64,000 nt of DNA from the sequence record NC_041878.1, one strand, 5' to 3'. A model generated the notes under the pieces. It worked only from the letters and a program-made list of their open reading frames with translations. It had not been told where the DNA came from and did not search any database. The translations under genes and the position numbers were made by a program. How positions within the stretch are numbered: the first letter of the stretch is position 1; each line of letters opens with the position of its first letter. Below, piece by piece: positions 5,698-62,581 of the stretch.

Positions 5698-6963
5698 ATG
5701 CATCCGGCATTAGTTGAATTACAAGAACGTGAATTAATCAATCAAAGTACTGATATTGAAGTACTGTCAAAACTACTTGACGAAGGTTCAGCAGTATATT
5801 GTGGTTTCGATCCTACTGCCGATTCTTTGCATATTGGTAGCTTACTACCACTGACTATCATGAACGTGTTTAAAAAACACGGCGTGAAAGTTATTGCACT
5901 TATTGGTGGTGCAACTGGTTCAATCGGTGATCCAAGCTTTAAATCTAATGAACGGCAAATGATGGATTGGGATACAATCGACCGCAATGTTGCTGGTGTT
6001 CATGCGGTAATTCGTGATGTTCTCGGTGAAGATGTTGAAATTGTCAACAATTATTCATGGTCTAAGGACATTAACATGCTTGATTTTTTACGTGATTACG
6101 GTAAATGTTTTACTGTTAATAACATGATTAATAAAGAATCAGTACGTTCTCGAATTGAACGAGATGACAAGGGTATTTCATTCACTGAATTTGCATACCA
6201 GATTCTTCAGGCAATGGATTTCGAACACTTATATGAAATGCGTAATTGTAAAATTCAAATTGGTGGTTCTGACCAATGGGGAAATATGATTGCAGGGATT
6301 GATTTGATTCACAAACTTCATGGTAATGATGCAGAATGTGGTGTTATTACAATTCCGCTGGTTACTAAAGCTGATGGTACTAAATTCGGTAAAACAGAAT
6401 CAGGTACTATCTGGTTAACAGAACAACGTACAACTCCGTACCATTTCTTCCAGTTCTGGCGTAATCTGGATGATGCTGAAATTCCAAAGTTGTACAAGTA
6501 CTTCAAACCATTTGGATTCAGTGTTGAAAGTATTGAATCAGAAATGAAAAATGGCGATCCAAATATCGTCAAATTACAATTTGCAATTGCTATGACAGTA
6601 CTGGTTCATGGTGATTATAAAGCAGATTTAGCACGTGATATTACTGACTTCTTACACGGTAAAAAAGAAATTACCGAAGAAGCAGTTGATATGATGATCA
6701 AGAGTGGATTTGAAGTTTCTGAAAGTACAGATAATCTTGAATTAGTTTCGTTGGTTGTCAGTACTGGATTAGCTGATTCCCGTAAAATGGCACGTGAGTT
6801 TATTAATAATGGTGCTGTAAAAATTAATGGTCGTAAAGTAAATGAGTTTTACGATACTGCAAATTGTGAATTTACAGAAGATGTAGATTTTGTAGATGCA
6901 AAACATTTTGTATTGCAGCGTGGTAAAAACACATATGTCGTTGTAAAAAATACAAGGCGTTAA
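5698..6963 (+). CDS. tyrS: tyrosyl-tRNA synthetase
   Basis: YCGFDPTADSLHIGS (HIGH), QIGGSDQWGN, KFGKT (KMSKS), C-terminal S4 domain. Confidence 0.97.
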   Translation: MHPALVELQERELINQSTDIEVLSKLLDEGSAVYCGFDPTADSLHIGSLLPLTIMNVFKKHGVKVIALIGGATGSIGDPSFKSNERQMMDWDTIDRNVAGVHAVIRDVLGEDVEIVNNYSWSKDINMLDFLRDYGKCFTVNNMINKESVRSRIERDDKGISFTEFAYQILQAMDFEHLYEMRNCKIQIGGSDQWGNMIAGIDLIHKLHGNDAECGVITIPLVTKADGTKFGKTESGTIWLTEQRTTPYHFFQFWRNLDDAEIPKLYKYFKPFGFSVESIESEMKNGDPNIVKLQFAIAMTVLVHGDYKADLARDITDFLHGKKEITEEAVDMMIKSGFEVSESTDNLELVSLVVSTGLADSRKMAREFINNGAVKINGRKVNEFYDTANCEFTEDVDFVDAKHFVLQRGKNTYVVVKNTRR

Positions 6964-10323: not shown

Positions 10324-10379
10324 ATTATAATTTTTAAGTTCGTAAATAAATTCACCTAAAATTAGACATGGAGAGTCGT

Positions 10380-12215
10380 ATGAATAGCGATAGATTGTAC
10401 AGTGATATTAACCAGTTTTTGAACCAAAGCAACAAAGATTTACTGAATGAGAATGCCAATAAAGATGCCAAAATTGTTAATACGCATCGTGATTTATTAG
10501 CAGGTATCCTATCTAAGCATTTTGCCGAAGATATTATTTCAGAAGATTTGATGCAATGGCATAAAAATGGTTATGGTCACATACACGATCTGGATTATTT
10601 TATAAGTCCACTAACTAATTGCTGTTTAGTGAATTACAGGGATATGTTAGAGAATGGATTTAAAATTGGGAATGCACAAGTTGGCACTCCTAATAGTATC
10701 GGAGTTGCAAGTACTGTCCTAACACAAATAGTACTGGCAGTTTCAGCAAGTCAATACGGTGGTCAAACACTTGCACATATTGACTTTGGATTAGAACCAT
10801 ATGTTCAGAAGTCCTACAACAAGCTCCTAGAGCAGCAGAAGGAATTTGACCTACCGGATGAGTACGTTGAAAAAACCCTTCAGAAAGAGGTCTACGACGC
10901 TATGCAAGCGTTATTGTACCAAGTAAACACCATCACTTCCAGCAATGGTCAAACGCCGTTTGTCACTATTACTATGGGATTGAATACTTCAAAATTCGGT
11001 AAAATGATTACGGATTCGTACTTAAAAGTACACGAAAAAGGTTTAGGTGTTGACGGCACTACACCAGTATTTCCTAAAGTTGTGTTCTTCCTAGAAGATG
11101 GCGTGAACATGAAAGAAGAAGATCCTAATTATGATTTGAAAGTGCAGGCAATGCGTACATCAGCTAAACGCATCTATCCTGATTTCGTTTCTGTACCATT
11201 GAATAAGAAAGTAACTGGAAGTACTTCTATTGCAGTTTCTCCTATGGGTTGTCGTTCGTTTTTAGGCAAATGGGAAGATGATGGTATTGAAAAATATGAT
11301 GGTCGATTTAATCTTGGAGTTGTATCAATTAACCTACCACTACTTGCGTTAGAGTCTAAATCTGATGGTGAATTCTTCGGAAAATTAGACTATCACATGT
11401 CAATGGCATATAGAGCACAAATGAATCGTGTTGAACGTTTAAAAAATATGAAAGCTCGTCAAAACCCAACTATGTTTATGGAAGGTGCTATTGCTAGATT
11501 GAAAGCTGATGATACCATTGAAGGTTTATTTTATGATGGTTATGCAAGTATCAGTATTGGGTATGTTGGATTAGCTGAATGTTCTGAAATCATGTTAGGA
11601 CAACTAAGCAAAGACTATTGTAAATCTATCTTGCATTATATGAAATATAAATGTGAGCAATTTAAAGAAGAAAGTAATATAGCATTTAGTTTATATGGAA
11701 CACCAGCAGAAAGTCTATGCTATAAATTTGCACGAGCAATTGAAGAAAAACATCCTAATATTCTAAAACGTGACTTTATTACAAATTCATTCCACCAACC
11801 AGTTTGGGTTGAATCATCACAATTTAAGAAGTTTGATTATGAAGAAAGTTTTGCTTATCTAAGTAATGGTGGAAATATTAGCTATGTAGAGACTCCAAAT
11901 CTTTCAAATAATCTCAAAGCATTGGAAACTCTTATTGACTATGCGTATGATAGAATTCCATATTTTGGGATTAACCAACCAGTAGATAAGTGTTATAAAT
12001 GTGATTTTGAAGGTGAGTTCGCAGTTGATAAAATTGGATTCCATTGTCCACAGTGTGATAATCGCGAAGAAGGAACTATGTCAGTTATCCGTCGAGTATC
12101 AGGATATTTGAGTGCACCTAATAGCAGACCTTTTAATACTGGAAAACAACAAGAAGTTATTCAGAGAATAAAACATGAAGAAGAAAAAGACACAACGAAA
12201 AGAGAGAACGACTGA
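10380..12215 (+). CDS. nrdD: anaerobic ribonucleoside-triphosphate reductase (class III), no ATP-cone
   Basis: HIHDLD, TNCC, PMGCR, CYKC...CPQC zinc site, RRVSGY glycyl-radical motif. Confidence 0.95.
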   Translation: MNSDRLYSDINQFLNQSNKDLLNENANKDAKIVNTHRDLLAGILSKHFAEDIISEDLMQWHKNGYGHIHDLDYFISPLTNCCLVNYRDMLENGFKIGNAQVGTPNSIGVASTVLTQIVLAVSASQYGGQTLAHIDFGLEPYVQKSYNKLLEQQKEFDLPDEYVEKTLQKEVYDAMQALLYQVNTITSSNGQTPFVTITMGLNTSKFGKMITDSYLKVHEKGLGVDGTTPVFPKVVFFLEDGVNMKEEDPNYDLKVQAMRTSAKRIYPDFVSVPLNKKVTGSTSIAVSPMGCRSFLGKWEDDGIEKYDGRFNLGVVSINLPLLALESKSDGEFFGKLDYHMSMAYRAQMNRVERLKNMKARQNPTMFMEGAIARLKADDTIEGLFYDGYASISIGYVGLAECSEIMLGQLSKDYCKSILHYMKYKCEQFKEESNIAFSLYGTPAESLCYKFARAIEEKHPNILKRDFITNSFHQPVWVESSQFKKFDYEESFAYLSNGGNISYVETPNLSNNLKALETLIDYAYDRIPYFGINQPVDKCYKCDFEGEFAVDKIGFHCPQCDNREEGTMSVIRRVSGYLSAPNSRPFNTGKQQEVIQRIKHEEEKDTTKREND

Positions 12216-14601: not shown

Positions 14602-17310
14602 ATGGCAAAACAAGTAAAAGGTACGTTGGATGTAGCCCGATACGCCACTTCTCAAGGACGAAATCTTGCACGGTCAGTGAGTGATTTGAACTTTGATACA
14701 AATGGTAATTTGGTCATTGATGCGTACACGACTGAAGAATTCAACAAAATTATTAGTGTACTACCAATTTCACACTATGGTTCATTTAACTACTTACCTG
14801 CGGGTGTGTATGGTTCATATGAAGGTGCGAGTGATGTTCCTGGTTATCGTTATCGTAAAATATTTGTAGAAGATAGCGGTACATTAACAATTCTACGTTC
14901 AGGCACTAACGGTGCTAAGCGTGGATTGTATTATTCATTTTTGGATAATATATTAACGACAACAAACTTAAACACAGCTATTAACACTAATAAAGAGTAC
15001 AAGCCAGGATATTTTGGTAGTTCTTATACTGCTAAAATGGCGTATGCCAGTGATGCTAGAATATGTGCAGGTATTGCACTTAATGCGTCAGGTGATGCAT
15101 ATACATTTATTTCATGGATGAATAATACATTAAACGATACCCAACACGTAGGTTCAATTGTACCAGCAAGTACTATACAACCTAATGGTGGAACAATGCG
15201 TTTCGTAATGACAGGAAATACTGAGATTTACTTCTTCAATGAAGTCAGTAATGGTAATGAATTGGTAATTGAATTACGTTCTGTTCCAATTTCTCAAGTC
15301 CGTGCATCTGCTACAACTTTAACTGTAACTGAATATGCCAACTGGACAACAAATGGTTTTTATGGTGAAGCTATCGCCAACCGAAATATAGTACTTAACA
15401 AGATGAAATTTAGTTCTAATGCTGCCGATAAACCATATATGTTAACTCCATCAACAACTACAAGCACTGAACCATATATGACAGGTGTGGATTTGTATGC
15501 TGCACAAAATGCTTCTGGTACAATTCGATTGCGTGTTGTTGGAGATGCGTGGTGTACAACTGTGTCAAGAAATACACGACCTAAACATAGCTATAGTTTT
15601 TTACTAAACCCTAGTACTAAAGTGGCTACATTAGAAGCCGGAAATACAGCCCCATTAACAATTACAGATCCTGGTTCTGGCACTGCATTAAACGTTGCTG
15701 GAAATACTTATACAGCAGACCCTATATTAACATATAATGGAAATAGAGTAAACCAAATAATGGGATATTACTATTTTGATAATGGAACCATTATCGCAAT
15801 TGCTACTGAAAACTTAGGAAGTGCTCCGACAAAAATTGAACGTGCTCAATATCCAAATGCAACTTCAATTTTTGATACATTACAAGTTCGTAATCATACA
15901 AGTACCAACTGGATTACTGGTTCAATGAATACTGCATTTGGTTCACCAGTAGGTTCTGAAGTTATGAGTTTTGAATGGCTACCTAATAATAGATACAAGG
16001 TTGGTTCAACGATTACTGGAAATGTTTTCAGACAATCTGTTAATCAATATAAACCAAATCCAACATATACATTTGGATCAGTATCTATGGGTACAATCAA
16101 AGGATTTGAACCAACTACAAACCGTTATGCAACAGCATGGAATGTTAACTATAACATTTTCATTAACTACATAAATGGTACGAATGTTACTACTAATGGT
16201 GGAATTTTCATTGAAAATATTCGTCAAAGTACTGCTGTAAGTTATAATGAAGATATGATTGGTACAGGTTCAATGAGTATTAACAATACTCTTTTAACAA
16301 ACTTAAAAAACCAACAACTGGCTAATGCAACATATCCAGTCGATACTTCGAATACGTCAGTACTTACACTATTTGTTCCACAACAAACAGACTGTCCTGC
16401 ATTTGCATTAATTAGTGGAGTTACTACATCATTAACAAACTATCTAAAAATTGTTGAAGTAAATGTTAACACCAGAACTGGTGCTATTACCACATTAACT
16501 TTCAAGAGACTTGTATATGAAGGTGCTGGTGATTATGGTGGAATAGCTTCACCTGCAACTTATGGTATAACTTATGCTTCAGTTGGTATTTCAATTTATG
16601 ACGCTGGTACATTTTATGTCATAGGTGGTGCTGACCCATATATCTATAAAACACAAGGTGACACTAATAGTGTTACATGGAGAGCAAAGGTAACTAAAAG
16701 TACTGGTCAAATAGATCATTTCGAAGTTATGGGTAGATACCAAACACATACACCAAGTGATACACAATTACCTTATGCAGTTCCTGGGGTGGGATTCGGT
16801 TATATTGATTTCGAAAGAAACGCTGCTGATGACCGTGTTCGTATTATTTTCCAACCTACCGGAACAACATTAGCACAATATAATGCATGGGCTGCTGTAG
16901 GAAGTCCAATTCTACTAGCATCACAGGATGTGGCTCAAGGATTTATTATATACTTCACTGAAAATACTTCAGTACTGTTGAGTGGTAAATCATTTACCAT
17001 GCCAATTCAAAACATAAACTTAGCAAACGTTAAGGCAAACCCTGCTAACAGCACATTCCACATTTATGTAACTATGGAAGAAGGTCTTGCCAAGTACTTA
17101 GCTACTGAACAGGTTATTGCAGAAACTGGTACAACAGCGTATAATACATTCTGGATTGGAACTGTAACTACAAATGCTAACCAAATAGAAACAATTAATA
17201 TTTTTAAACGCAGCCGATTAGATGTATTTGGTGCATCACTAGAAGCAGCAGGTTCTTCATTCCCTGTGAGTTATGGATTACCATCTGCAAGCGGTATTAT
17301 TAACTGGTAA
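14602..17310 (+). CDS. large virion structural/fibre-like protein, paralogue 1
   Basis: 902 aa, Thr/Ser/Asn/Gly-rich; shares N- and C-terminal blocks with the next two genes. Confidence 0.75.
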   Translation: MAKQVKGTLDVARYATSQGRNLARSVSDLNFDTNGNLVIDAYTTEEFNKIISVLPISHYGSFNYLPAGVYGSYEGASDVPGYRYRKIFVEDSGTLTILRSGTNGAKRGLYYSFLDNILTTTNLNTAINTNKEYKPGYFGSSYTAKMAYASDARICAGIALNASGDAYTFISWMNNTLNDTQHVGSIVPASTIQPNGGTMRFVMTGNTEIYFFNEVSNGNELVIELRSVPISQVRASATTLTVTEYANWTTNGFYGEAIANRNIVLNKMKFSSNAADKPYMLTPSTTTSTEPYMTGVDLYAAQNASGTIRLRVVGDAWCTTVSRNTRPKHSYSFLLNPSTKVATLEAGNTAPLTITDPGSGTALNVAGNTYTADPILTYNGNRVNQIMGYYYFDNGTIIAIATENLGSAPTKIERAQYPNATSIFDTLQVRNHTSTNWITGSMNTAFGSPVGSEVMSFEWLPNNRYKVGSTITGNVFRQSVNQYKPNPTYTFGSVSMGTIKGFEPTTNRYATAWNVNYNIFINYINGTNVTTNGGIFIENIRQSTAVSYNEDMIGTGSMSINNTLLTNLKNQQLANATYPVDTSNTSVLTLFVPQQTDCPAFALISGVTTSLTNYLKIVEVNVNTRTGAITTLTFKRLVYEGAGDYGGIASPATYGITYASVGISIYDAGTFYVIGGADPYIYKTQGDTNSVTWRAKVTKSTGQIDHFEVMGRYQTHTPSDTQLPYAVPGVGFGYIDFERNAADDRVRIIFQPTGTTLAQYNAWAAVGSPILLASQDVAQGFIIYFTENTSVLLSGKSFTMPIQNINLANVKANPANSTFHIYVTMEEGLAKYLATEQVIAETGTTAYNTFWIGTVTTNANQIETINIFKRSRLDVFGASLEAAGSSFPVSYGLPSASGIINW

Positions 17311-17319
17311 GGAAATCAA

Positions 17320-20070
17320 ATGGCTTATACAATTAAAGGCGATATTCAAGCTACTAGAATAGTAGTTCAAGGAAAAACTGTGGGTGCTGGCATCAGCACC
17401 ACTGATAACAGTATTGTTTATACTGCCGACACGTCAGGTCATCTAGATCTGCCAATTCCTTCTGCATCTGATATAGATTATGTACTAAATCAATTTCCAT
17501 TATCTCAATATGGAGCAATTAATAATAATCCTATCGGTGTTAGCGGAACGTTTGATGGTGGTAGTACTATAGCATATTATTCCAGTATGCCAGTATTATT
17601 GGAAAATGATGGTACGTTAGCATTCTTACGCCCTGGTTCAAACGGGGCAACCATCAACTATTATTATACGTATATTAATACACCAGAAACAAGCACAAAG
17701 CCAAATACTACAATTCAAAAGTATTATACTGGTTCAAGTAAGAATATTATTTTTTATGATTCATATACAAAAGACACGCTAATATATGAAGATATTGATA
17801 ATCATGTAATTCATTTAGTATTAACAAATGGAACTTTACAAAAAAGCTATCACAAAGAAGTAAGTTTTAATAGAACTATTCTTCCATATAATATTATGAG
17901 TGCGTTAAAAGTTGATTCATATGTGTATATTTTTGCATTATATAATCCATCATTTAACTACAACAATCCTATATCTATTAATAATATATCTAACGTTGAA
18001 GCTCAATTTGTTGTATATAGAGTTCCAGTATCACAAATTGAGTCAGGTGGAACTATCAGTAGTATAGAGCAAGTATCTGGAATTAGTGGCACAAATATGT
18101 ACGGAACTGCTGTTACTGATTCAAACGCAATAAAAATTGCTGATACATGGTGCAGTACAAATGAATCGGGAACGCAATCATTTATAAAATATCCTGGTGG
18201 ATTGGGAATCGCAGTATCTCCGATCACATACTCAATTAACGGAGCTGCTAAAGCATATTTCGATGGTACAAATATTATTTTTTCATATTATACTAACTGT
18301 ACATCTACGAATTCATCTGCACGACAAGATACTATGTATGGGTTTACTATTACATTCAATCCATCATCAAAGGCTTATAGTACAGATTTGAGCAATGTTC
18401 CATTAACCGTTTCTGGTGGGTCAACTGGAACCTTAGTTTGGAACAATCCATACTCAATAAATTCAAATAAAATATACGGCACTGGAAACGCAATTTCTGA
18501 TGGTAATTCTAGTTCATGGTATATTAGTGAATCGGGTATACAATATGCAGTGAAAGAAAAATATGTACTTCAAGATTTTTATATGGTAACTCGATGCTCG
18601 ATAAACGGATTTACAAATAAAGCTGATGCATATAAAATACGTAATAGAAGTTTAACATTAACATCTAGTACTAAAGTTCCTGGTGATTATGCTTCTCGTG
18701 TTGGTGATCAATTAACAGGTGGTTGTCCAATTAGTAGTACGCGGATTATGTTCACTGGTACGGGTTCATATCAGGGAGTTAGCTATAATAAGTACAGTCG
18801 TGGGATTGCTGATATTGGTACGGCACATACATACACATACAATTCTCTTGATAGGGGAACTATCGTTGGATATGCACCACAAAATTATCGAGTTCCTTTT
18901 GGTGATACTAATGAATCTTTAACACGTTCAAAGATTTCTTTATGTGATGCGGCAGGGAACGTAAATGCATATGGTTGTGCATTTATAGAAAATAGTGGTC
19001 TTAGTGCTGGTTTTAAATTAAATCCAAACACTCTTTCCTATGACACTACTATCAGTATATCTAACACTACGTTAGTTAACTTAAAAAATTCTATACTTGC
19101 AAATGCAGGAATAACAAATCCAGCCGATGCAAAAATTGGATTATATTATGTTCCAGATAGCTCTTATTGTAAAAGTATTGCTACCGTTGCAGTATATAAT
19201 GGTTCTGGATTAGGTGGGAGATATTTATTTGCAACGGTAGATTGTACTTTATCTGGAACAGTAGTTAATACTGCAACGCTTAATACTGTGTTTGTCAACA
19301 ATCCATATACAAATATGCAGAGTATTAATATTGATTCTAATGAAATATTTGCAAAATCAGGACTGTCATGCGTTAAGTATGCAGATTTTACATATATAGC
19401 TATTAGTGGTCTTTTAACATATCGTGTTCCTGGAGATTCTAACGAATTATCATGTGCTGGTGTAGTTGATGGCAATACAGTTTCTAATGCTATCGTATCT
19501 GCAAGCTACCATGTTAAGGGAAATAGTTCTTCAGCTAGAGAATACAGTTATATTCCGAACTTAGGTTTTGGTTTTTATCTTTATGGAAATACCGACAAAG
19601 GAACTAAGTTGATATTCAAAAACTGTGGTAATACATTAGCACAATTTAACTCAAACATTGTATCTGGTACTGGAACTGATGTTGTTATTTTAGCACAAGA
19701 TATTCCTCAAGGATTTTATATATACTTTACTGAAACTACTCCATTGTTTATAAGTGGGCAATATTTCGATGTGCCTATTTCGGTAATTAGTTTGGATCAA
19801 GTTACTGCATCCCCAGGAAACAAATCTTATTTTATATACATACAATTAGTACTAGGCACTCCACGATATGTTGCAAGCTTGACTGAACTTCCTGAAAGTT
19901 CTACTACCATGTTTATTGGTACAGCTACGACTGATGGAACAAAAGTATCTTCATTAAATATTAAGAAGGTTTCACGTTTCGATGTGTACAGACCAAGCTT
20001 AACACAAATCGGTTCTGCATTCCCTGTAAGTTCGGGTAACCCAACACAGAGCGGAACTATTGGATGGTAA
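17320..20070 (+). CDS. large virion structural/fibre-like protein, paralogue 2
   Basis: 916 aa; LENDGTLAFLRPGSNG and LAQDIPQGFYIYFTE blocks. Confidence 0.75.
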   Translation: MAYTIKGDIQATRIVVQGKTVGAGISTTDNSIVYTADTSGHLDLPIPSASDIDYVLNQFPLSQYGAINNNPIGVSGTFDGGSTIAYYSSMPVLLENDGTLAFLRPGSNGATINYYYTYINTPETSTKPNTTIQKYYTGSSKNIIFYDSYTKDTLIYEDIDNHVIHLVLTNGTLQKSYHKEVSFNRTILPYNIMSALKVDSYVYIFALYNPSFNYNNPISINNISNVEAQFVVYRVPVSQIESGGTISSIEQVSGISGTNMYGTAVTDSNAIKIADTWCSTNESGTQSFIKYPGGLGIAVSPITYSINGAAKAYFDGTNIIFSYYTNCTSTNSSARQDTMYGFTITFNPSSKAYSTDLSNVPLTVSGGSTGTLVWNNPYSINSNKIYGTGNAISDGNSSSWYISESGIQYAVKEKYVLQDFYMVTRCSINGFTNKADAYKIRNRSLTLTSSTKVPGDYASRVGDQLTGGCPISSTRIMFTGTGSYQGVSYNKYSRGIADIGTAHTYTYNSLDRGTIVGYAPQNYRVPFGDTNESLTRSKISLCDAAGNVNAYGCAFIENSGLSAGFKLNPNTLSYDTTISISNTTLVNLKNSILANAGITNPADAKIGLYYVPDSSYCKSIATVAVYNGSGLGGRYLFATVDCTLSGTVVNTATLNTVFVNNPYTNMQSINIDSNEIFAKSGLSCVKYADFTYIAISGLLTYRVPGDSNELSCAGVVDGNTVSNAIVSASYHVKGNSSSAREYSYIPNLGFGFYLYGNTDKGTKLIFKNCGNTLAQFNSNIVSGTGTDVVILAQDIPQGFYIYFTETTPLFISGQYFDVPISVISLDQVTASPGNKSYFIYIQLVLGTPRYVASLTELPESSTTMFIGTATTDGTKVSSLNIKKVSRFDVYRPSLTQIGSAFPVSSGNPTQSGTIGW

Positions 20071-20082
20071 AAGGAATTTTAA

Positions 20083-22833
20083 ATGTCTAAAAAAATCATA
20101 GGTGATATGAGCGTTCAGAGGAACGCTCAATCAAATGGTAGAAACACAATTCGTGATGTTAATAATATAGCCGCTGATGTTAACGGTAATATTAATCTAC
20201 CATATTATAACAAAGAATACATCAATAAAGTAATGTCAACAATCCCACTATCTCGTATTGGAACAATGGATTACCTACCAATGAATATAAATGGTTCATT
20301 TGAAGGTTCTAGTAACTATATTGGGAAAGGGGTATATCCTATTTTATTAGAGAATGATGGTACATTGGTTTATCTTCGTCCGGGTACAAACGGAAGTACA
20401 TTTGGATATTATTATTGCTATGTTTCTAATGCAAGAACCGTACTTAACTTAGCTCCAGTTGTGACTAATGAAAAATTTACACCAACAAATTTTACATCAT
20501 CACACACCTTAGACTCTTTCATAAGTACAGATGCTTCTGAATTATTAATGATGCGTACAAATGATGGAACAAACGATACTTATACATTATCATTAACTAA
20601 CGGAACGATGAATAGCGTTGCACATCAGAATTTAGAGTTCCCAGCAAGCACAATAACTGGTACTGATCCACAATATGCAATGGTTGTTGATAATTTAATT
20701 TATATATTTTGTTTAGATGGATATAGTAACACTAGTGAAATGGCTATATCAGTATACACTTTACCAAAAAATAATATCATATCTGGAACCTTTACTGCAT
20801 TGACTAAGGTAACAGGATTCAGTGGAGTGAATTTATTTGGTACTAGCATCAGTGCTTCTCCAAATATAAAATTAGCTCCTATGTATTTTAGTAATACACC
20901 ATCAGATAATTCATTGTATTGCGTACCAACTGGTAATGTATATAGAGGGTTCTCTTCATTTTGGGGAAATAATGAAGGTACACTTCATGCTGAACGAAAT
21001 GATAGATTAATACGAATTGCATTTGTCCATGCAGCAGAAGCGACAACACAGCAATCAAACACACGTTCGTTGTCGGCAATAAGCTTAGTACTGGACACCA
21101 GCAACAAAAAATATACACTAGACAATACAAATACGGGTCAGGTTACAATAACAACCAATCCCACTACTGGTGCAATAACCTGGAATAATCCGTACTCCGC
21201 TAATATGGAAAATTACTCTGGTCTTTCAGTAAATGGTTCACTAAACCGTGTACCAACTTACGCGACAACTTCAGATGGTGTTCAGTTCACATCTACTGCA
21301 AGACATGATTCATCACCAGAACACTATATAAGCAGATGTAAAATTAATAATTTTGTTTCACGATATAATGCCTGGAACGTTACTACTCGTTCAGTAAATT
21401 CGATGTTGCTTAATATTGTAAATCCAGTGTTTGGTTCTGTAATTGGTGAGAACTTGATTCACCCAACAATTATCTCAAGTTCTAAAATATTAATGCATTG
21501 CAGTGGTACATATAATAATAATATCACAGATTATAACACAAACGTTTATACAACATTATCTGGAAATCCTGATTATGTTTATAAATCAGTATCTACAGGT
21601 GGCACAATAAATGGATTTAAACCAAGTGAAGAACGTGTCATTTTAAATAATCCAGACTATAGATATACTGGTTGTGTAACTATTATGAATCAAGATGGAA
21701 GTACTAAAGTGTATGGTTCATCATTTGTTCAAGATATTAATAAATTCTCTGCGTTAGAGATGAACCAGAATGATTTTTCATACTCTCAACAGATTACGAT
21801 GAATAATACATTACTTAATAATTTAAAACAAGATGTAATGGATTCAGTTACGTTACCGTATCCTGTACTACAAAGTTATATCGTTTTATATTATGTACCA
21901 GATAACTCTTACTCAAAAAGTTATGCTGTTGTTACTATGTTATTTGACGCACCTACTGGTACTGCTAACTCATATCACATACTGTCAGAAGTTGATGTTA
22001 CATTAAGTTCGAATTCTGTTACTGCGTACAATATTTTATCTAGTTACTTAATTAACCGAAATATTGTTGCAAGATCTATTAATACAGGTTTAATTGAACG
22101 TATGGGTGGTATGATAATTGCTAAATATCAAGAATTTACATACGTTGGAATTCCGACACTATTTGCAGTGAATACATCGGCGGGTAATTTCTCATCTTTA
22201 ATTTGTAAAGTTGATAATAGTACTAAAATGATTAAATCTACTCCAAAAATGATTTCAACTGCTTATAACTCAAGCACTGCAAATTCATATCAAGTCGGGG
22301 TAATTCCAAAGTTAGGTTTTGGATTATTTGAAAATGGTGCAATTACAGATATAAAAACCAAACTAGTATTCAAAAACTATGGAACAACAGAAGCACAATT
22401 TGATGCTATGGTGGCGAATCCGGCAAGCAATCCTCTGTCTAGAATAGTTATTGCTGCTCAAGATGTTGCGGAAGGATTTATTATATATTTCACACAACGT
22501 GTTCCTGCTTTTATACAAGGGAATTATTTTGAAATGCCAATAACATCCATTAATTTGAATGATATTACTTCTAATCCATCCAATAAAACTTTTTACTTGT
22601 ATATTACGATTGTAGAAGGTGAGGCGGTATATCAGATTAGTGAGTCGTTGCTTTCTGAAGAATTATATCGTGTATATATTGGTACTATAGTTACTGGTCA
22701 ATCGGCAATTACATCTATCAGTACTGAGAAAGTTACAAGGTTCTTGAACTATAGAACAAGCACGACTAAGCGTGGTTCTGCAATTCCTACGAGTACTGGC
22801 GTACCGTCAGGTACAGGCACTCGTTGGCATTAA
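20083..22833 (+). CDS. large virion structural/fibre-like protein, paralogue 3
   Basis: 916 aa; LENDGTLVYLRPGTNG and AAQDVAEGFIIYFTQ blocks. Confidence 0.75.
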   Translation: MSKKIIGDMSVQRNAQSNGRNTIRDVNNIAADVNGNINLPYYNKEYINKVMSTIPLSRIGTMDYLPMNINGSFEGSSNYIGKGVYPILLENDGTLVYLRPGTNGSTFGYYYCYVSNARTVLNLAPVVTNEKFTPTNFTSSHTLDSFISTDASELLMMRTNDGTNDTYTLSLTNGTMNSVAHQNLEFPASTITGTDPQYAMVVDNLIYIFCLDGYSNTSEMAISVYTLPKNNIISGTFTALTKVTGFSGVNLFGTSISASPNIKLAPMYFSNTPSDNSLYCVPTGNVYRGFSSFWGNNEGTLHAERNDRLIRIAFVHAAEATTQQSNTRSLSAISLVLDTSNKKYTLDNTNTGQVTITTNPTTGAITWNNPYSANMENYSGLSVNGSLNRVPTYATTSDGVQFTSTARHDSSPEHYISRCKINNFVSRYNAWNVTTRSVNSMLLNIVNPVFGSVIGENLIHPTIISSSKILMHCSGTYNNNITDYNTNVYTTLSGNPDYVYKSVSTGGTINGFKPSEERVILNNPDYRYTGCVTIMNQDGSTKVYGSSFVQDINKFSALEMNQNDFSYSQQITMNNTLLNNLKQDVMDSVTLPYPVLQSYIVLYYVPDNSYSKSYAVVTMLFDAPTGTANSYHILSEVDVTLSSNSVTAYNILSSYLINRNIVARSINTGLIERMGGMIIAKYQEFTYVGIPTLFAVNTSAGNFSSLICKVDNSTKMIKSTPKMISTAYNSSTANSYQVGVIPKLGFGLFENGAITDIKTKLVFKNYGTTEAQFDAMVANPASNPLSRIVIAAQDVAEGFIIYFTQRVPAFIQGNYFEMPITSINLNDITSNPSNKTFYLYITIVEGEAVYQISESLLSEELYRVYIGTIVTGQSAITSISTEKVTRFLNYRTSTTKRGSAIPTSTGVPSGTGTRWH

Positions 22834-27287: not shown

Positions 27288-27619
27288 AACCATCACGTGA
27301 AGATATAATTCGTTCAGTCAATGAACAACGTAAAGAATTTTCAGACAGGATGAATGAAGAAGCAAAAGGTATGGTAGTTTATGACTTAACTACACAGGAA
27401 GGACGTGATCGTTTCTTGGTAGATAATTCACACATATTATTACCAACTGAATTAGAACCAGTACTTGCCAAGATTCACACTGTTGGTGAACTTGGCAATT
27501 CATCATGGTACGAAGTAGTTTATCATAACGGTACTGAATGGTGCTGTTATGCAGGTTCCGACACATTTAAGGACGGTGAGCATGTTCTACGTTGGAAGTA
27601 CTGCAAAGACATTTTATAA
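27284..27619 (+). CDS. hypothetical protein
   Basis: 111-aa ORF in operon context. Confidence 0.7.
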   Translation: MKPSREDIIRSVNEQRKEFSDRMNEEAKGMVVYDLTTQEGRDRFLVDNSHILLPTELEPVLAKIHTVGELGNSSWYEVVYHNGTEWCCYAGSDTFKDGEHVLRWKYCKDIL

Positions 27620-27627
27620 GGAAGATA

Positions 27628-28878
27628 ATGAGCGATAATCATCTAGACAATCTAATTGTAAGACACCTAGCGGGGTCACAAGCATACGGTACAAGTACAC
27701 CAACATCTGATACTGATTTTCGCGGTATCTTCATGGCAGATAAAGAGTTTATTCTAACACCATTCTTTACTGTAAATGAAGTTTCTGACGTTTCAGAAGA
27801 AGATACAAAGTACTACGAACTTAACAACTACATGAAACTCTATCTTGACGCTAACCCAAATATTTTAGAATCACTATGGGTTGATGAGTCAGATATTGTA
27901 TTCAGTACTGAACTATATGAACATCTACGTGGTTCACGTTCTGAACTTCTATCTTCTAAGATTGCGTTTACATACACTGGCTATGCACATAACCAAGCAA
28001 AACGTATGAAAAACCATCATAGTTGGATGGATAAAGAACGTACTGGCGTTCGTATGCTACAGGAAATTTTTAACGACTATCCATGTCAGCAAACTATTGA
28101 CTGGATTGGTGATAACTTCCCTGACTACATCTTTAATCTACTAGATGTAGAACGTGGTCGTGGTCTGTACATTAAAACTATTCTCGCAATTAACTTCGAG
28201 AAATATATGAGAAATGCATCTCTACAGATGCTAAGTACTCAACCACTAAAACAATATCACTTTATTAAACTAGTTCATAACTATTTTGATTATCAAGTAC
28301 TGGATCGTGATTTCAATATCCTAAACTTTAATCATGGTTATCAACTTGTTCCTTATGGTGATAACACATTTGGTCTAGTGATCAAAGAAGGTAGTAGAGT
28401 TTTAAACGATGATGGTAGTATTCACCGCATTGACACTTCAAATCTGACTCTTGAAGAAGTTAAAGAGCAGCCAAAGATGATTGTCAAATTCAACAAAGAT
28501 GAATATGAAAAAAGTTCTGATAACAGAAACAACTATCATAGTTGGAAAAAGAATCGTAACGAAGCACGTTCTGCACTTGAACAAGCTAATGGGTATGACA
28601 CCAAACATGCGATGCATGTTGTCCGTCTTCTACGTACAGCAGAAGAAGCACTAACTACAGGTGAAGTTCTGGTTAAACGGCCTGATGCTGAAGAACTTCT
28701 GTCTATTCGTAATGGTGCATGGACATTTGATGAAATGATGGAGTACTGGACAGATCGTGATCAGTATATCCGTGAAGTACTTTATAAACAAACAGAATTA
28801 CCTAAAACTCCGAACATTCATGCAGCAGCTAAGCTACTAATTGAACTTCGTGAAATGCAATGGTACGGGAGCAAATAA
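27628..28878 (+). CDS. nucleotidyltransferase (Nuc-transf / T4 NrdC.11-like)
   Basis: GSQAYGTSTPTSDTDFRG, ANPNILE, YDTKHAMHVVRLL, EELLSIRNG. Confidence 0.85.
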   Translation: MSDNHLDNLIVRHLAGSQAYGTSTPTSDTDFRGIFMADKEFILTPFFTVNEVSDVSEEDTKYYELNNYMKLYLDANPNILESLWVDESDIVFSTELYEHLRGSRSELLSSKIAFTYTGYAHNQAKRMKNHHSWMDKERTGVRMLQEIFNDYPCQQTIDWIGDNFPDYIFNLLDVERGRGLYIKTILAINFEKYMRNASLQMLSTQPLKQYHFIKLVHNYFDYQVLDRDFNILNFNHGYQLVPYGDNTFGLVIKEGSRVLNDDGSIHRIDTSNLTLEEVKEQPKMIVKFNKDEYEKSSDNRNNYHSWKKNRNEARSALEQANGYDTKHAMHVVRLLRTAEEALTTGEVLVKRPDAEELLSIRNGAWTFDEMMEYWTDRDQYIREVLYKQTELPKTPNIHAAAKLLIELREMQWYGSK

Positions 28879-31973: not shown

Positions 31974-32228
31974 ATGGATGATGTATATTACCGTATCATT
32001 CGCACAAGCGAAGATGATACACTACTAACCGTTGTGTGTATGCAATGGTTTGATGAACATGATTATGATAAAGATCGTTTCCTATGTGAAAAGGGTACAC
32101 GTAATCGTTTATCATTCAGTACTGAAGACGAAGCTATTGAGTTCTTGAATGTTAATATTAAATTGGAAAATATTGATCCAGAATATCGTAGGCAAACACA
32201 AAAGTACAATGACAATTTCTACAAATAA
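31974..32228 (+). CDS. hypothetical protein
   Basis: AAGGA RBS, 84 aa. Confidence 0.7.
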   Translation: MDDVYYRIIRTSEDDTLLTVVCMQWFDEHDYDKDRFLCEKGTRNRLSFSTEDEAIEFLNVNIKLENIDPEYRRQTQKYNDNFYK

Positions 32229-32229
32229 A

Positions 32230-32258
32230 TGAAACGTTTTTGAATTTTGTGGTATAAT
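32230..32258 (+). promoter_or_regulatory. TGAAAC-class promoter
   Basis: TGAAAC-N17-TATAAT with TGTGG extension. Confidence 0.75.
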
Positions 32259-32263
32259 GTAGG

Positions 32264-32735
32264 GGAAGACACTAAAAGCGTCTTCTCTTGTTTAAAACTC
32301 TGATTGATCCAGATATGGAATAGTTGAAACCTGCACTGATGAAAATGTAATTGGTGAGATGAGTAGTTCAATCAGTACGAGTGCAATATATTTTACCCGT
32401 TAGGAATCGGCATAGTTTGTACCGACCACGGCAATGCGGCACTTTAAATGCGTCCTTGACATGAACGCACTAGATAGGCATTAGAGGCATACTCACCTGT
32501 TAAAAGGGAGATATTCTACGGAATATCAATAGTATTTGTTGCTGAATTAGCAAGTACTATATGCGAAGGAATGTGAAATCTTCGACCGTTGTATGCGACT
32601 GTAGTAACTGGAAACCGGACAACCCGCCAGTGTTTACTACAAATTTTAGACAATATAGATCCGTCCAAAATTTGAGTAAAATCTACAAATTCAGAGGTAA
32701 GACTACCACCGTCAGATATATTCTGACTTTTTTTT
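32264..32735 (+). ncRNA. candidate ~470-nt structured non-coding RNA of unknown class
   Basis: bounded by a promoter and a terminator; at least six hairpins; no ORF with a credible RBS. Confidence 0.6.
32711..32735 (+). terminator. intrinsic terminator
   Basis: GTCAGA-TATAT-TCTGAC followed by T8. Confidence 0.8.
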
Positions 32736-32889
32736 CGTTCCCCTTTCGTGGGGGGATGCAAATGGATCAACAAACCCCGTCAGTATAACAGTATTGAACG
32801 TATTAAATATAAGTACTTCGAATTGAGTTTCATTGTACAAACGTCAGTGCAGTACAATAAACGAAATTCTTGGCTAACGGAGTTAGACA

Positions 32890-33255
32890 ATGAACCTATC
32901 AGAAAACAAGTATTTCTACGATGTAATGAGTAGATACTTCCTAATTTTAATTGAGATGAATTTGTACCAGTACAGATTCAATAGAATTTTTCTTAATGAA
33001 CACAATGATGATAAATCTCTTGGTATTTTTGAAGCTATGAAAGAATTAGCTGAGCTAGGAGAAAAAGTCGTTTGTGTTAATTTCGATCCCAATTTTCCTG
33101 TACAAGAAATAGAAAATCTATCATTCATTGATAGTAAACTTTACGGATTCCACCAAGAAGACTGTGATTTTCTTTTTGTGTACGGGCATTTGAATTTCAA
33201 AATAATTAGCAATATCAGTCGTGACTACAATCCAAAGTTTATTTTCCACTGCTAA
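32890..33255 (+). CDS. hypothetical protein
   Basis: GGAG RBS, 121 aa. Confidence 0.65.
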   Translation: MNLSENKYFYDVMSRYFLILIEMNLYQYRFNRIFLNEHNDDKSLGIFEAMKELAELGEKVVCVNFDPNFPVQEIENLSFIDSKLYGFHQEDCDFLFVYGHLNFKIISNISRDYNPKFIFHC

Positions 33256-38679: not shown

Positions 38680-38704
38680 CATGGCAGTGAGTATCATATA
38701 TCAT
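38676..38704 (+). promoter_or_regulatory. sigma70-type promoter
   Basis: TTGACA-N17-TATCAT upstream of the RNA ligase gene. Confidence 0.6.
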
Positions 38705-38738
38705 GCTCGAAATTAAACGAAACAAGAGAAAAATAAAA

Positions 38739-39995
38739 ATGACTGAATTAGTAACTGAAGGACGTAAACTGGTCACCATTCGTAAAGTTAATGCAGTTGA
38801 CCCAATTGAAAATGCAGACGCTATTGAAGTAGCAACTGTAGATGGTTGGCAGGTTGTAATTAAAAAAGGTGAATTTACCCCGACTAATTACTGTGTATTT
38901 TTTGAAATTGATTCTTTCTTACCTGCTGATAATCCTCTTTTTGGATTCCTTATTCGTAATGGAACTAAAAAAGATGAAGCTGGTGTAGAACGTATTCGTT
39001 TACGTTCTGTTAAACTTCGTGGTCAGATCTCCCAGGGACTTGCACTACCAATTGATATTATCAATATGGATACTGTTAATTCTCTGGCTGATGCAATGAA
39101 CATTAAAGAATCAGACGGTGTAGAACGTTTCTTTAAAGTACTTCGTACTCTTGAAGAAACTCGCGATGGTATTGAAAACTTTTTAAATGTCACTAAGTAC
39201 GAACGTCCTGATGAACGCAATGGCGGTACTGGTGCAGGTAAAGCTAAGGTTGCTGGGAACTTCCCAATCGTAGTACCGAAAACTGACGAAGATCGTATTC
39301 AGAATGTATTTGGTAAATTCAAACAGACTATGCAGGGTGTTCCGTTCCGTAAGTCTCTTAAACTGGATGGTTCTAGTCAGACTATTGCATTCTTCAACAA
39401 TCCAGACTTCTTTGTTGATAAAGTAGACGACGAAGTTGTTCAGTGGGATGAAGAATCTCAGGAATTGAAAGTAATTGAAGTTAAACCTTATCCGTTCCAG
39501 TGGGAAACTTGTCAGGTAGTTGTATGTTCTCGTAATCTGGCACTGAAGTTTGATGAAAATGCATCATTCTGGAAAGCAGCATTGAAAGATGATATTCCTG
39601 CACGACTGAAGAAGTACTGTGAAGATCATGATCGTCAGCTTGCATTGCAGGGGGAATGCATCGGACCTGGTATTCAGGGAAACCGTGAACAATTAGAAGA
39701 ACATGAATTCTATTGTTTCCGTATTTGGGATGTTGATAATCAAAACTTCCTTGATGATGCTGATTTTCTTGAAGTAACGAGTATTCTTGGTATTAAGATT
39801 GTACCACAAGGTGAAATTGTAAATTTCTTTGATGTATATGATACCATCAAAGATGCACTTAACAGTGCAGAACATGCAAGTATGGTTCATCCAATTGCAG
39901 AAGGTGATGTGTGGAAGAGTACTGTTAAAGTAAATGGACAAACTATTCACTTTAAAGTGATCAATAATGAATATCTATTAAAGTCAGAGAATTAA
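38739..39995 (+). CDS. ATP-dependent RNA ligase (DRB0094/Rnl2-like family)
   Basis: N-terminal OB-like domain (ADAIEVA, FEIDS, LRGQISQGL); motif I KLDGSS, QGE, EG.V.K, FKVIN. Confidence 0.88.
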   Translation: MTELVTEGRKLVTIRKVNAVDPIENADAIEVATVDGWQVVIKKGEFTPTNYCVFFEIDSFLPADNPLFGFLIRNGTKKDEAGVERIRLRSVKLRGQISQGLALPIDIINMDTVNSLADAMNIKESDGVERFFKVLRTLEETRDGIENFLNVTKYERPDERNGGTGAGKAKVAGNFPIVVPKTDEDRIQNVFGKFKQTMQGVPFRKSLKLDGSSQTIAFFNNPDFFVDKVDDEVVQWDEESQELKVIEVKPYPFQWETCQVVVCSRNLALKFDENASFWKAALKDDIPARLKKYCEDHDRQLALQGECIGPGIQGNREQLEEHEFYCFRIWDVDNQNFLDDADFLEVTSILGIKIVPQGEIVNFFDVYDTIKDALNSAEHASMVHPIAEGDVWKSTVKVNGQTIHFKVINNEYLLKSEN

Positions 39996-40613: not shown

Positions 40614-40642
40614 TGAAACGCCACAAAAAAATGTGGTATAAT
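40614..40642 (+). promoter_or_regulatory. TGAAAC-class promoter
   Basis: TGAAAC-N17-TATAAT; followed by a leader hairpin at 40648-40682. Confidence 0.75.
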
Positions 40643-40736: not shown

Positions 40737-42251
40737 ATGTCAGCATTTAAAAACGCAGTAAACAACGTAAACACAACCGCAGCAAATAACCGTTCTACAA
40801 CCGCTAATGGTGGTGCATCTCTAAAGAGTACCCTAAACCCATTGGTTGATCTGTTCTTCATGATCGGTTCTCTACGTAACAAAGATCTTGGTGCGTACAA
40901 AGCTCAATTTGACGCAGCATATGCAGCTAATTCAACATTAGCATTGCAGATGATTCTTTGGGCACGTGATATTCGTGGCGGTGCTGGTGAACGTAATACA
41001 CCACGTGAACTTTTAAAGTACTTGGAAGTTAAACATCCAGAAGATGTTTTGCGTGTGATTCCAGTACTTGCAGAATTCGGTCGTTGGGATGATCTTTTGA
41101 TCTTCAAAACTGCTGCTGCTAAGTCTGTGGCTTACGCTGCAATCGCAGAAGCACTACAAGCAGGAAATGGCCTTTGTGCAAAATGGATGCCACGCATCTA
41201 TAAGTTCAAAAAGAACGCACAAGGTGTTGTTGACATGAATACCACGGCTAACAAAAACCGTGCACATAACAACAAGATTGCTCGTGAAATCATGTCTGTG
41301 ATGAACATCAACGAGCGTACTTATCGTAAGCTACTTTCATCTTTGAGCAACACTGTTGAACAGAAGATGTGTGCTAACGAATGGGATGAAATCGAATACG
41401 GCAAGCTTCCATCAGTTGCAAGTTCTCGTTATCTACCAGCATTCATGAAACGTGATGAAAATCGCTATCGTGAGTACTTAGCTTCTCTTGAAAAAGGTGA
41501 AGCGAAAGTTAACGCTGGTGCATTGTTCCCATACGATGTAACTCGCAAGTTGAACACCACTGCACAAGCAACTACTCTTGCAGTAGCACAGTGGAATGAG
41601 TTGAAAAACTTTATGGGTGAAAACACCGCAGTACCAATGGTGGATACCTCTGGTTCCATGACTTGTCGTGCTGGTGATAGCGGTCTGTCTTGTATGGATA
41701 TTGCTATCTCTCTTGGTCTGTACATTGCAGATAAACAAGAAGGTGCGTTCAAAGACTTGTTCTTGAACTTTAGTACTCGTCCTCAGATTTTCGAACTGAA
41801 GGGTAATAACATTGCAGAGAAGCATCGCGATCTGTTCCGTTATACTGACAGTCGTTATTGGGGTGGCAGCACCAACATTGAAGCAGCTTTCCAGGAAGTT
41901 CTTCGTGTTGCAGTTGCACAGCAGGTTCCTGCTGACCAAATGCCAAAGAACTTAATTGTTCTTAGCGATATGGAGTTCAACGCATCAACTTCTGGAGCAT
42001 GGAATACCACTGCGTACAATAAAGCGAAAGCTGACTTTGCACGTGCTGGATATGAATTGCCAGTAGTTGTGTTCTGGAACTTAAACGCACGTGCGGGTAA
42101 CAACCCTGTGAAGTTCGACCAGAACAATGTAGCAATGGTAAGTGGTTTTAGTCCAACCGTACTAGAAGCAATTCTAAGTGGTGAGGATGTAGATCCAGTA
42201 CAGGTTATGCTACGTGCAATCGATACTCCACGTTATCGTGTACTAGGTTAA
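40737..42251 (+). CDS. DUF2828 / TROVE-like helical domain plus vWA domain protein
   Basis: WARDIRGGAGER, EFGRWDDL, CAKWMPR, YRKLLS, VEQKMC; MIDAS VDTSGSM and LSDMEF; FWNL. Confidence 0.85.
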   Translation: MSAFKNAVNNVNTTAANNRSTTANGGASLKSTLNPLVDLFFMIGSLRNKDLGAYKAQFDAAYAANSTLALQMILWARDIRGGAGERNTPRELLKYLEVKHPEDVLRVIPVLAEFGRWDDLLIFKTAAAKSVAYAAIAEALQAGNGLCAKWMPRIYKFKKNAQGVVDMNTTANKNRAHNNKIAREIMSVMNINERTYRKLLSSLSNTVEQKMCANEWDEIEYGKLPSVASSRYLPAFMKRDENRYREYLASLEKGEAKVNAGALFPYDVTRKLNTTAQATTLAVAQWNELKNFMGENTAVPMVDTSGSMTCRAGDSGLSCMDIAISLGLYIADKQEGAFKDLFLNFSTRPQIFELKGNNIAEKHRDLFRYTDSRYWGGSTNIEAAFQEVLRVAVAQQVPADQMPKNLIVLSDMEFNASTSGAWNTTAYNKAKADFARAGYELPVVVFWNLNARAGNNPVKFDQNNVAMVSGFSPTVLEAILSGEDVDPVQVMLRAIDTPRYRVLG

Positions 42252-62180: not shown

Positions 62181-62555
62181 ATGATACCAAAAACCAACAG
62201 TACTGAATATCAATACCAGGTTTTAAAATCCATCAGAGAAGTTCATGAATTCGATTCTGAACTCTCTGATAAAATGATTTTAATGTCTATTTTTGATAAT
62301 TACAGAACTGGTGGTGGTCTAAGATTGAGTGAGTTGGGGTATCAAATTTGTAACGACAATTCTTTATACGAGTTTCTACCAGTACCGATTAAAAAATCGG
62401 ATCGCAATTCAAACGTTTATACATCATTAGACCGAATTTGCACCACTCCATACTATGTTCGTGGAGATACTTTGTACTTATCAGATGATTTAGTAATCGC
62501 ACAACTTACGTTTTGTTGCGATGACTTTGCTAAATTGTTTGCTGCATTTTTGTGA
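62181..62555 (+). CDS. hypothetical protein
   Basis: 124-aa ORF. Confidence 0.7.
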   Translation: MIPKTNSTEYQYQVLKSIREVHEFDSELSDKMILMSIFDNYRTGGGLRLSELGYQICNDNSLYEFLPVPIKKSDRNSNVYTSLDRICTTPYYVRGDTLYLSDDLVIAQLTFCCDDFAKLFAAFL

Positions 62556-62581
62556 AACGTCTAAAAAAATTGTGGTATAAT
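62553..62581 (+). promoter_or_regulatory. TGAAAC-class promoter
   Basis: TGAAAC-N17-TATAAT with TGTGG extension. Confidence 0.75.

Follow-up and report, generated by a model that had tools for sequence, protein, structure and literature searches.

The DNA considered here, 64,000 nucleotides of sequence record NC_041878.1 and referred to below as the window, derives from Pectobacterium phage vB_PcaM_CBB (KU574722.1), to which the region examined here is 100% identical. This Rak2-like jumbo myovirus of the genus Mimasvirus has a 378-kb genome, and a window position equals the position in the CBB record minus 62000. Between two small hypothetical genes on the plus strand, CBB_167 (31974-32228) and CBB_168 (32890-33255), lies a gene-free gap of 661 bp (32229-32889). 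As had been claimed at the first reading of the sequence, this is the largest gap in the window: every other internal gap measures at most 290 bp when coverage is counted with open reading frames (ORFs) of at least 75 amino acids. The plus strand carries 78 of the 84 window ORFs of at least 100 amino acids. Comparison of homologues shows the gap to be the gene for a non-coding plus-strand RNA that is equipped with a promoter, is predicted to adopt a conserved, multiply knotted fold, and is one of three to five old paralogues residing at fixed loci. We place the gene at 32230 to ~32790, with a possible extension to ~32889.

Two ORFs lie inside the gap, one of 75 amino acids on the plus strand and one of 85 on the minus strand, and both are interrupted by frameshifts and stop codons in nearly all orthologues. 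Variable columns are distributed over the three codon phases as 46, 45 and 49, without three-base periodicity. Because the ORFs are broken in orthologues and substitutions fall evenly on the codon phases, the region is non-coding. Small ORFs have been annotated over the element in the GenBank records of fHe-Yen9-03/04, Kaldavass, Hallingskeid and fENko-Kae01; they differ from record to record and are spurious. In the UE-S1 record, part of one copy is labelled ‘repeat_region’.

The gap opens with a promoter of the TGAAACG class (TGAAACGTTTTTGAATTTTGTGGTATAAT, 32230-32258, plus strand), arranged as TGAAACG-N13-TGTGGTATAAT with an extended –10 element, and the proposal that the RNA has a promoter of its own was borne out. 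The class is enriched in the window, with three occurrences against 0.04 expected, all on the plus strand. One of the others (40614-40642) precedes the gene for a DUF2828/DUF7788 protein; the third (62553-62581) is followed, up to the window end, by ~1 kb without a complete ORF of at least 75 amino acids, which is probably an ORF running past that end. The same promoter arrangement is found at all five copies of the element in the CBB genome. The paper describing this genome reports a ‘divergent RpoD-like’ promoter class with the –35 sequence TGAAACG, mostly upstream of DNA-synthesis genes (PMC5259590).

The five copies were located by motif scans of IMG/VR and by BLASTN with each copy type. 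All lie on the plus strand of the CBB record: the D copy at 32269-32879, the A copy (the gap element of the window) at 94229-94889, the E copy at 174367-174964, the C copy at 258084-258698 and the B copy at 336241-336855. They are thus co-oriented, with 84 kb between copies at the widest and 52 kb, measured across the genome ends, at the narrowest, and each lies in a gene-free gap of ~650-790 bp; the window holds no further copy, and the other four lie outside it. By BLASTN the gap is 83-90% identical in phages of Mimasvirus and Eneladusvirus, among them GAP32, XbC2, Kaldavass, BF, pEa_SNUABM and fHe-Yen9-03/04, and its central part is ~76% identical in Asteriusvirus and Munch-like phages. The same five loci are occupied in GAP32, XbC2, Kaldavass, BF, the SNUABM phages and fHe-Yen9, and Asteriusvirus and Munch-like phages show two to four places each. 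In total, 62-72 phage records match, and the family was found only in Rak2-like jumbo phages of Enterobacterales, Xanthomonas being given as host in two records. A scan of metagenomes returned nothing beyond close relatives. A scan of bacterial genomes gave 120 chance matches, none with other family motifs; the pattern used was too loose, so absence from bacteria is weakly supported.

In a maximum-likelihood tree of 53 non-redundant copies, the sequences group by locus type across genera. Since these clades span several genera, the duplications are old. The copy at the D locus of CBB groups in the B clade and shares the loop-tail helix AUUGUAU/AUACAAU of B copies. Together with a swappable hairpin (H2a, below) whose two forms do not track the clades, this points to exchange between paralogues. 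The placement and helix of the D-locus copy suggest gene conversion between the B and D loci, ~52 kb from each other when counted over the genome ends.

To compare the copies, we aligned them to a profile hidden Markov model, scanned all pairs of columns and kept stacked runs with compensatory change. Pair counts refer to the 53 non-redundant homologues; RNAalifold was run on 42 sequences for the 5' domain or 43 for the 3' half. The scan yielded 56 pairs in 12 helices, of which 99.2% are canonical, with 646 compensatory cells (both sides changed) and 36 covarying pairs. When the 3' partner was slid by one to three columns as a control, 30-41% of pairs were canonical and 22-79 cells compensatory. 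A scan for parallel pairing served as a second control: runs with at least two covarying pairs numbered 10 in antiparallel orientation and 1 in parallel orientation. G.U combinations occupy 153 cells and A.C combinations 3, and since G.U lies far above A.C, the plus strand is the strand that folds. RNAalifold recovered both parts independently, the 5' domain with double changes at 17 of its 27 pairs and the 3' half with a covariation term (–8.4) that exceeds the folding term (–6.0). Folded as a single sequence, a 530-nt stretch gave z = –3.5, and none of 100 dinucleotide shuffles folded as well. Covariation was not found in support of four other pairings, namely GAUGA/UCAUC, AACCCGC/GYGGG of the 3' element, C-run/AAGGGAG and GACUAUC/GAUAGAC. 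Blocks of invariant sequence are found mainly in the junctions and loops, not in the covarying helices.

Most of the stems named in the original prediction show compensatory changes in the homologues: AGGGGAAGAC/GTCTTCTC, CTGATTGA/TCAATCAG, TCCA/TGGA, GATATTC with its partner GAATATC, ATAGTAT..TTGCT/AGCAA..GTACTAT, CTGG/CCAG and AAATTTTAGAC/GTCCAAAATTT. For one, proposed as TGTAGTAACTGG/..TTACTACA, the CTGG/CCAG part holds, but its TGTAG covaries with CTACA at 32683-32687 rather than at 32637-32641. Comparison with the homologues further revealed features that had gone unnoticed: pseudoknots and long-range helices, conservation past the terminator, and the four additional genome copies.

The predicted fold comprises a three-way junction, two pairs of crossing (pseudoknot) helices and two long-range helices, all on the plus strand. 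At its 5' end stands an optional terminal hairpin, H0 (32261-32289), present in the A- and D-type clades and missing from CBB's own D-locus copy; its compensatory changes in A-type orthologues include GGGGAAGAC/GUCUUCUC, GGUGAAGA/UCUUCACC and CAUGAAGA/UCUUCAUA. The three-way-junction domain recovered by RNAalifold (32300-32375) is closed by H1 (32300-07/32368-75), with 0-3 sequences of 42 broken and 12-16 double changes, and contains the hairpin H1a (32308-19; 13-26 double changes per pair) and H1b (32334-40/32350-56; 9-18 double changes per pair), which carries the conserved loop GAAAAYGUA. The string AGAUGAG.AG is conserved in the junction.

In the first pseudoknot (32381-32481), H3 is crossed by Hx, with H2 and H2a inside and H4 between. 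H3 (32381-84/32439-42) reads GUGC/GCAC, GAGC/GCUC, CAGC/GCUG or UAGC/GCUA among the copies, and Hx (32434-36/32479-81) reads AUG/CAU, AAG/CUU, AUC/GAU or AUA/UAU. H2 (32397-400/32428-31) encloses the swappable hairpin H2a (32404-32426), for which two unrelated forms are spread across the paralogue clades, a short one (GGCAUAGUUUGUACC) and a long one (GUACUAGCAGUC...UAAGACUACG). The H4 hairpin (32449-53/32465-69) has 111 compensatory cells, and an invariant junction GAUAG (32473-77) precedes the 3' strand of Hx. Between this pseudoknot and the next, the alignments place H5 (32484-86/32492-94), an invariant AAGGGAG (32504-10), the H6 hairpin (32510-27), which changes from GAUAUUC/GAAUAUC to GUCUC/GAGAC among copies, and the H7 hairpin (32529-60) with its loop CUGAAUU at 32542-48.

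The second pseudoknot occupies the region 32563-32631, which also holds the H8 hairpin (32564-68/32580-84). Here H11 (32588-92/32619-23; GUUGU/ACAAC, GUUGC/GCAAC, GUUAC/GUAAC) crosses H9 (32607-11/32627-31; ACUGG/CCAGU, GGAAG/CUUCC, GAGAG/CUUUC, GAUGG/CCAUC; 0 broken of 43) among the invariant blocks CGACCGUUG and AACCCGC. A peripheral hairpin module with the loop AAUAUAGAUCC (32641-32673) lies 3' of H9 in A- and C-type copies and 5' of H7 in B-, D- and E-type copies; by the alignments, the relocated module is a natural permutation. Both long-range helices were found by RNAalifold and by covariation. One joins UGUAG to CUACA (32600-04/32683-87); the other joins the H7 loop CUGAAUU to AAUUCAG in the tail (32542-48/32688-94), a 7-bp loop-tail helix that could form within one molecule or between two. 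Their 12 pairs are broken in 0 of 43 sequences, nine of the pairs show 13-27 double changes, and the two helices hold 146 and 84 compensatory cells.

Downstream of the folded body, a hairpin resembling an intrinsic terminator, GTCAGATATATTCTGAC followed by T8 (32711-32735), has a 6-bp stem with three G-C pairs; as a G+C-containing hairpin followed by a U-run it is a candidate terminator on sequence grounds. Its position is conserved among A, C and E, but B and D are without such a hairpin there. The RNA had been proposed to measure ~470 nt and to end at its own terminator. The terminator-like hairpin and T8 are indeed present, but conservation is strongest 3' of them and two copies do without; therefore the functional unit is probably ~530-700 nt, or yields two products. 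Columns invariant across 41 copies are concentrated 3' of T8, at 32738-32783 (CCCC/GGGGGGAUG...ACAAA.C..GUCAG). This stretch belongs to a 3' element (32738-32790), which holds most of those columns and consists of a C-run/G6 hairpin (32740-55), GGGGGGAUG.AA.UG..UCAACAAA, a tail motif and an A/U-rich UAUAA. The G/C hairpin noted earlier after the terminator (32740-32755) is real and forms part of the most conserved block of the family. Scans with 3'-element motifs returned family loci almost exclusively, with one chance match, and GGGGGATG occurs once in the window.

The tail motif at the end of the conserved part of the 3' element (32770-32783, ACAAA-Y-C-NN-GUCAR) has a twin just before the terminator (32702-32715, ACUA-Y-CA-NN-GUCAR, with GUCAG here), and these direct repeats vary in parallel. 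The two motifs agree at Y in all 52 copies compared (U in 28, C in 24), although Y has switched independently several times on the tree; they agree likewise at the last N in all 52 and at the first N in 40. The spacing between the motifs varies by ~45 nt, and some copies read GUCAAU, the terminal G being not strictly conserved. No internal guide complementary to the motifs was found in the RNA body. We read the two as probable sites for one sequence-specific reader; this may be a protein or a processing activity, or it may act on DNA. The ACCA within the upstream motif (32705-32708) had been raised as a possible 3' end of the transcript; it is not a conserved CCA end, because other paralogues read AUCA.

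A less conserved trailer (32791-32889) follows, with GAAUUGAGUU, a hairpin with a ACGUCAGUG loop, AAAUUCUU and a hairpin CUAAC-GGA-GUUAG. The block is common to A, C and E, and weaker conservation reaches the start of the next gene, also in the E copy, 3' of which there is no co-directional gene. The last hairpin (32874-32886), immediately 5' of the AUG of CBB_168, has the Shine-Dalgarno sequence GGAG of that gene inside it. A-type orthologues conserve this hairpin, and translation of CBB_168 may be under its control.

Against known RNAs, Rfam 15 was searched at gathering score with the whole window, and in E-value mode (E up to 10) with four sub-regions and seven other members, in pieces including 851, 231 and 301 nt. 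No credible match was obtained on the element: all listed matches have E values of at least 0.4 and scores far below the family thresholds. One of them, CRISPR-DR26 on the minus strand at 32309-32330 (19.6 bits, E = 0.4-1.5), lies antisense to H1a and was judged a chance match. ARAGORN found no tRNA or transfer-messenger RNA (tmRNA) in the 64-kb window or at seven other family loci. A tmRNA, standard or permuted, is rejected on the negative ARAGORN and Rfam results and because the ACCA is AUCA in most paralogues. RNase P RNA gave no Rfam match, and a P4-type pairing of CR-I with CR-V was not found; motifs that we presumed to resemble it (AGAUGA.U, GUGCAA..A.AAACC, ACAACCCG) differ in order and pairing. 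Likenesses that we had likewise assumed to tmRNA, hammerhead, box C/D and boxA/ops elements were not borne out by the tools. Bacterial Y RNA is rejected as well: there is no Rfam match, the phage RNA is five times larger than the ~100 nt of a Y RNA, and the TROVE-like ORF lies 8 kb away while the neighbours of other copies are unrelated. No published description of the family was found in a search that covered sources other than the supplementary lists of PMC10690425.

ROOL, GOLLD and OLE are large ‘ornate’ bacterial and phage-associated RNAs whose biochemical function is not known (PMC12286853). The phage RNA matches none of their covariance models and is not a member of these families. It resembles them in its size class (~0.5-0.8 kb), its many covarying helices, its invariant loops and junctions and the lack of a linked protein gene, and carriage by phages is common to ROOL, GOLLD and this family. 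Unlike them, it has no tRNA genes nearby (ARAGORN, 64-kb window), occurs as three to five diverged fixed-locus paralogues per genome, has a post-terminator element with twin motifs, and is found in Rak2-like phages only. A parallel in layout comes from PA5oct, a jumbo phage related to the Rak2-like phages, in which RNA-seq defined four untranslated long non-coding RNAs of 236-619 nt, ncRNA001-004 (PMC7318152). The longest, ncRNA004 (619 nt), resembles the E copy in being encoded on the plus strand with minus-strand genes on either side. The PA5oct RNAs have no nhmmer homology to the family at E up to 10 and contain no invariant family motif; by analogy of layout, ncRNA004 may be a comparable element in a related lineage, and the PA5oct RNAs demonstrate that strong transcription from such loci is possible. 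The suggestion of a new phage long non-coding RNA outside known families is well supported by the strong covariation, the lack of a conserved ORF, the promoter and the absence of any credible match in Rfam or by ARAGORN. No catalogued family matches, and the case for a new class of large structured RNA in phages is a strong one.

What, then, does the RNA do? It is encoded by a stand-alone gene: it has its own promoter, no neighbouring protein is common to the copies by BLASTP and Pfam, and in both CBB and 121Q the E copy, itself on the plus strand, has minus-strand genes around it and adjoins that for endonuclease VII. The E copy also lies beside a recombination endonuclease gene, has a bidirectional terminator ~250 nt 3' of it and is followed by no plus-strand gene. 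We consider it slightly better than an even prospect that the product would be a stable RNA or ribonucleoprotein particle acting through its fold, a proposal that draws on analogy with the ornate RNAs. It is favoured because the fold and its invariant junctions are under selection, one copy is free-standing and antisense to its neighbours, and hairpins stand at both ends of the A copy. On this proposal the RNA would accumulate as a stable particle, capped by the 5' hairpin and the terminator hairpin, and would not be an mRNA leader. Its action would be in trans, whether by itself, as an oligomer or together with a protein, in the manner of ROOL and GOLLD. Those two RNAs homo-oligomerise through contacts of a loop-to-distal-strand type, and the loop-tail helix of the phage RNA could by analogy be intermolecular. 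The twin motifs (..YC(A)NNGUCAR) and the G6 element would be read by a sequence-specific factor or would mark processing sites.

A more far-reaching version, which we think rather unlikely, is that Rak2-like jumbo phages have a new class of large RNA of their own, catalytic or self-assembling, whose five paralogues each act at or from their own loci. Such an RNA might, for example, process itself at the GUCAR motifs, releasing or circularising the G6 segment, or might assemble into a multi-RNA particle on which a 350-kb genome depends for its replication or expression.

Several observations weigh against the stable particle. The ends, abundance and stability of the RNA are all inferred, and the analysis turned up neither a partner protein nor a catalytic activity. 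Conservation is highest 3' of the terminator, and the 3' element, conserved in sequence but without covariation, could act as DNA. Because B and D lack the terminator, at least their RNAs would continue towards downstream genes in the manner of leaders. Five fixed, dispersed and co-oriented loci suit a task in cis better than pure dosage. Given the arrangement of the loci, the terminator-less copies and the post-terminator element, two models of action in cis therefore stay alive.

In the first, the RNA would be a cis-acting operon leader, in which the nascent RNA, the hairpin and the ACAAA-rich 3' element modify RNA polymerase or control the terminator; this would be processive antitermination or attenuation of the HK022 put, EAR or nut/boxA type, licensing the long plus-strand arrays that follow the copies. 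The likeness to such leaders lies in a promoter-proximal structured RNA, with a promoter directly 5' of every copy, a terminator between body and conserved 3' element in three copies, and long co-directional arrays ahead. Plus-strand gene arrays lie 3' of the copy at four of the five loci, which are syntenic across genera; the complete succession of promoter, RNA, terminator and co-directional operon is seen at A and C, the arrays at B and D come without a terminator, these two copies leading straight on towards the next gene, and E does not have this layout. The preponderance of plus-strand ORFs in the window also suits a leader. The E copy does not, flanked as it is by minus-strand genes and soon followed by its bidirectional terminator, with no co-directional gene downstream. 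Nor does size: known antitermination RNAs measure 70-120 nt, against ~450 nt with five long-range helices here, four to six times larger than put/EAR, and no homology to the Rfam models was found. The likeness to boxA, as we take that element to be, is just CUC..AACAA, without a U-run, and no NusG/RfaH-like or N/Q-like partner turned up, though none was searched for. We regard a leader as the less likely explanation by a good way, if the best of the rivals.

In the second cis model, the RNA would be a pre-primer for replication, made from a middle-type promoter as in ColE1 RNA II, T4 ori(uvsY)/ori(34) or mitochondrial CSB II; its G6 run would nucleate an R-loop near the 3' element and prime the leading strand, the five copies being five origins, as T4 too has several per genome. 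Like ColE1 RNA II and the T4 origins, the element has a promoter, then ~0.5 kb of untranslated structured transcript with a G-run near the presumed 3' end. The dispersed and co-oriented copies, the association of the promoter class with DNA-synthesis genes (PMC5259590), the invariant G6/C-run beside a terminator-like site, the nucleases adjoining the E copy, and twin direct repeats that could be protein sites on DNA would all fit. Unlike those models, the phage RNA has a far more elaborate tertiary structure with invariant junctions, which a primer would not need, and no homology to them. Cumulative GC skew climbs steadily across the element without inflection, a weak test for a T4-like phage; the ~45-nt variation in the spacing of the twin motifs fits phased DNA binding poorly; and an AT-rich unwinding block with iterons is missing. 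An origin by analogy is improbable in our view.

A self-processing ribozyme with a group-I-like core, by descent or by convergence, overlaps with the stable particle; its cleavage or ligation at the paired GUCAR sites would define the 3' end, or else excise or circularise the segment between the motifs. The order H3-H2-Hx-H3'-H4-Hx' corresponds to the group I topology P3-P4/P6-P7-P3'-P8-P7', invariant junctions are typical of catalytic RNAs, and the twin motifs vary as would two substrates of one reader. An A-rich strand and the purine-rich junction AGAUAG would presumably answer to J3/4 and J8/7 of the group I consensus as we take it to be. The order H3/H2/Hx/H4 is itself supported by covariation; such a topology is not confined to group I, however, the equivalent of P4-P6 is here one 4-bp helix and a hairpin, and nothing in group I corresponds to the second pseudoknot or to the two further long-range helices. 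A group I intron (RF00028) or GIR1 proper is rejected: neither these models nor other Rfam ribozymes matched at E up to 10 in pieces of 230-300 nt, no gene or exon is interrupted, there is no P1 guide or other internal guide complementary to the twin motifs, and the terminal purine is A in some members (GUCAAU). We hold the ribozyme to be doubtful, on a par with the origin. Least probable by far is that the element is not an RNA at all and represents a missed protein-coding region, a dispersed DNA repeat or a remnant of a mobile element, as the small ORFs in some GenBank records and the ‘repeat_region’ label might suggest, since these ORFs vary from record to record and are disrupted in orthologues, strand-specific covariation preserves helices and not codons, and the copies are orthologous at fixed loci and not recently mobile.

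At the first reading, the RNA had been proposed as a possible partner of a ‘TROVE-like’ protein, presumably the DUF2828/DUF7788 protein at 40737-42251 in the window, 8 kb from the A copy. Such a partnership is not favoured because the protein is that far off and the other four copies lie in unrelated neighbourhoods. The A copy also has a gene set of RNA-repair type nearby, with an RlaP nucleotidyltransferase at 27592-28878 and an RNA ligase with a PHA02142 OB domain at 38703-39995; neighbours of this type occur at one of the five copies, the A copy. Elsewhere in the window we observed a PIN-PhoH fusion (401-1846), a phage tyrosyl-tRNA synthetase (5698-6963), an anaerobic ribonucleotide reductase (NrdD, 10368-12215) and, at 14602-22833, three tandem paralogous ORFs of 902-916 amino acids spaced by ~2750 bp, with DNA blocks 64-83% identical and no Pfam match, which may encode fibre or ‘hair’ proteins of this whiskered phage.

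Natural RNAs of such size and complexity are rare, and they have repeatedly proved to be ribozymes, the cores of ribonucleoproteins or, lately, RNA-only cages. For the RNA of the Rak2-like phages the comparative support is exceptionally clean, and its layout, with several copies at fixed loci, is undescribed for ROOL, GOLLD and OLE. The phages can be cultivated, and some of them, such as 121Q, PBECO4 and EJP2, infect laboratory Escherichia coli. The layout, the relocated hairpin module and the twin motifs that vary in parallel offer concrete experimental handles, and the family would be a useful addition to Rfam.

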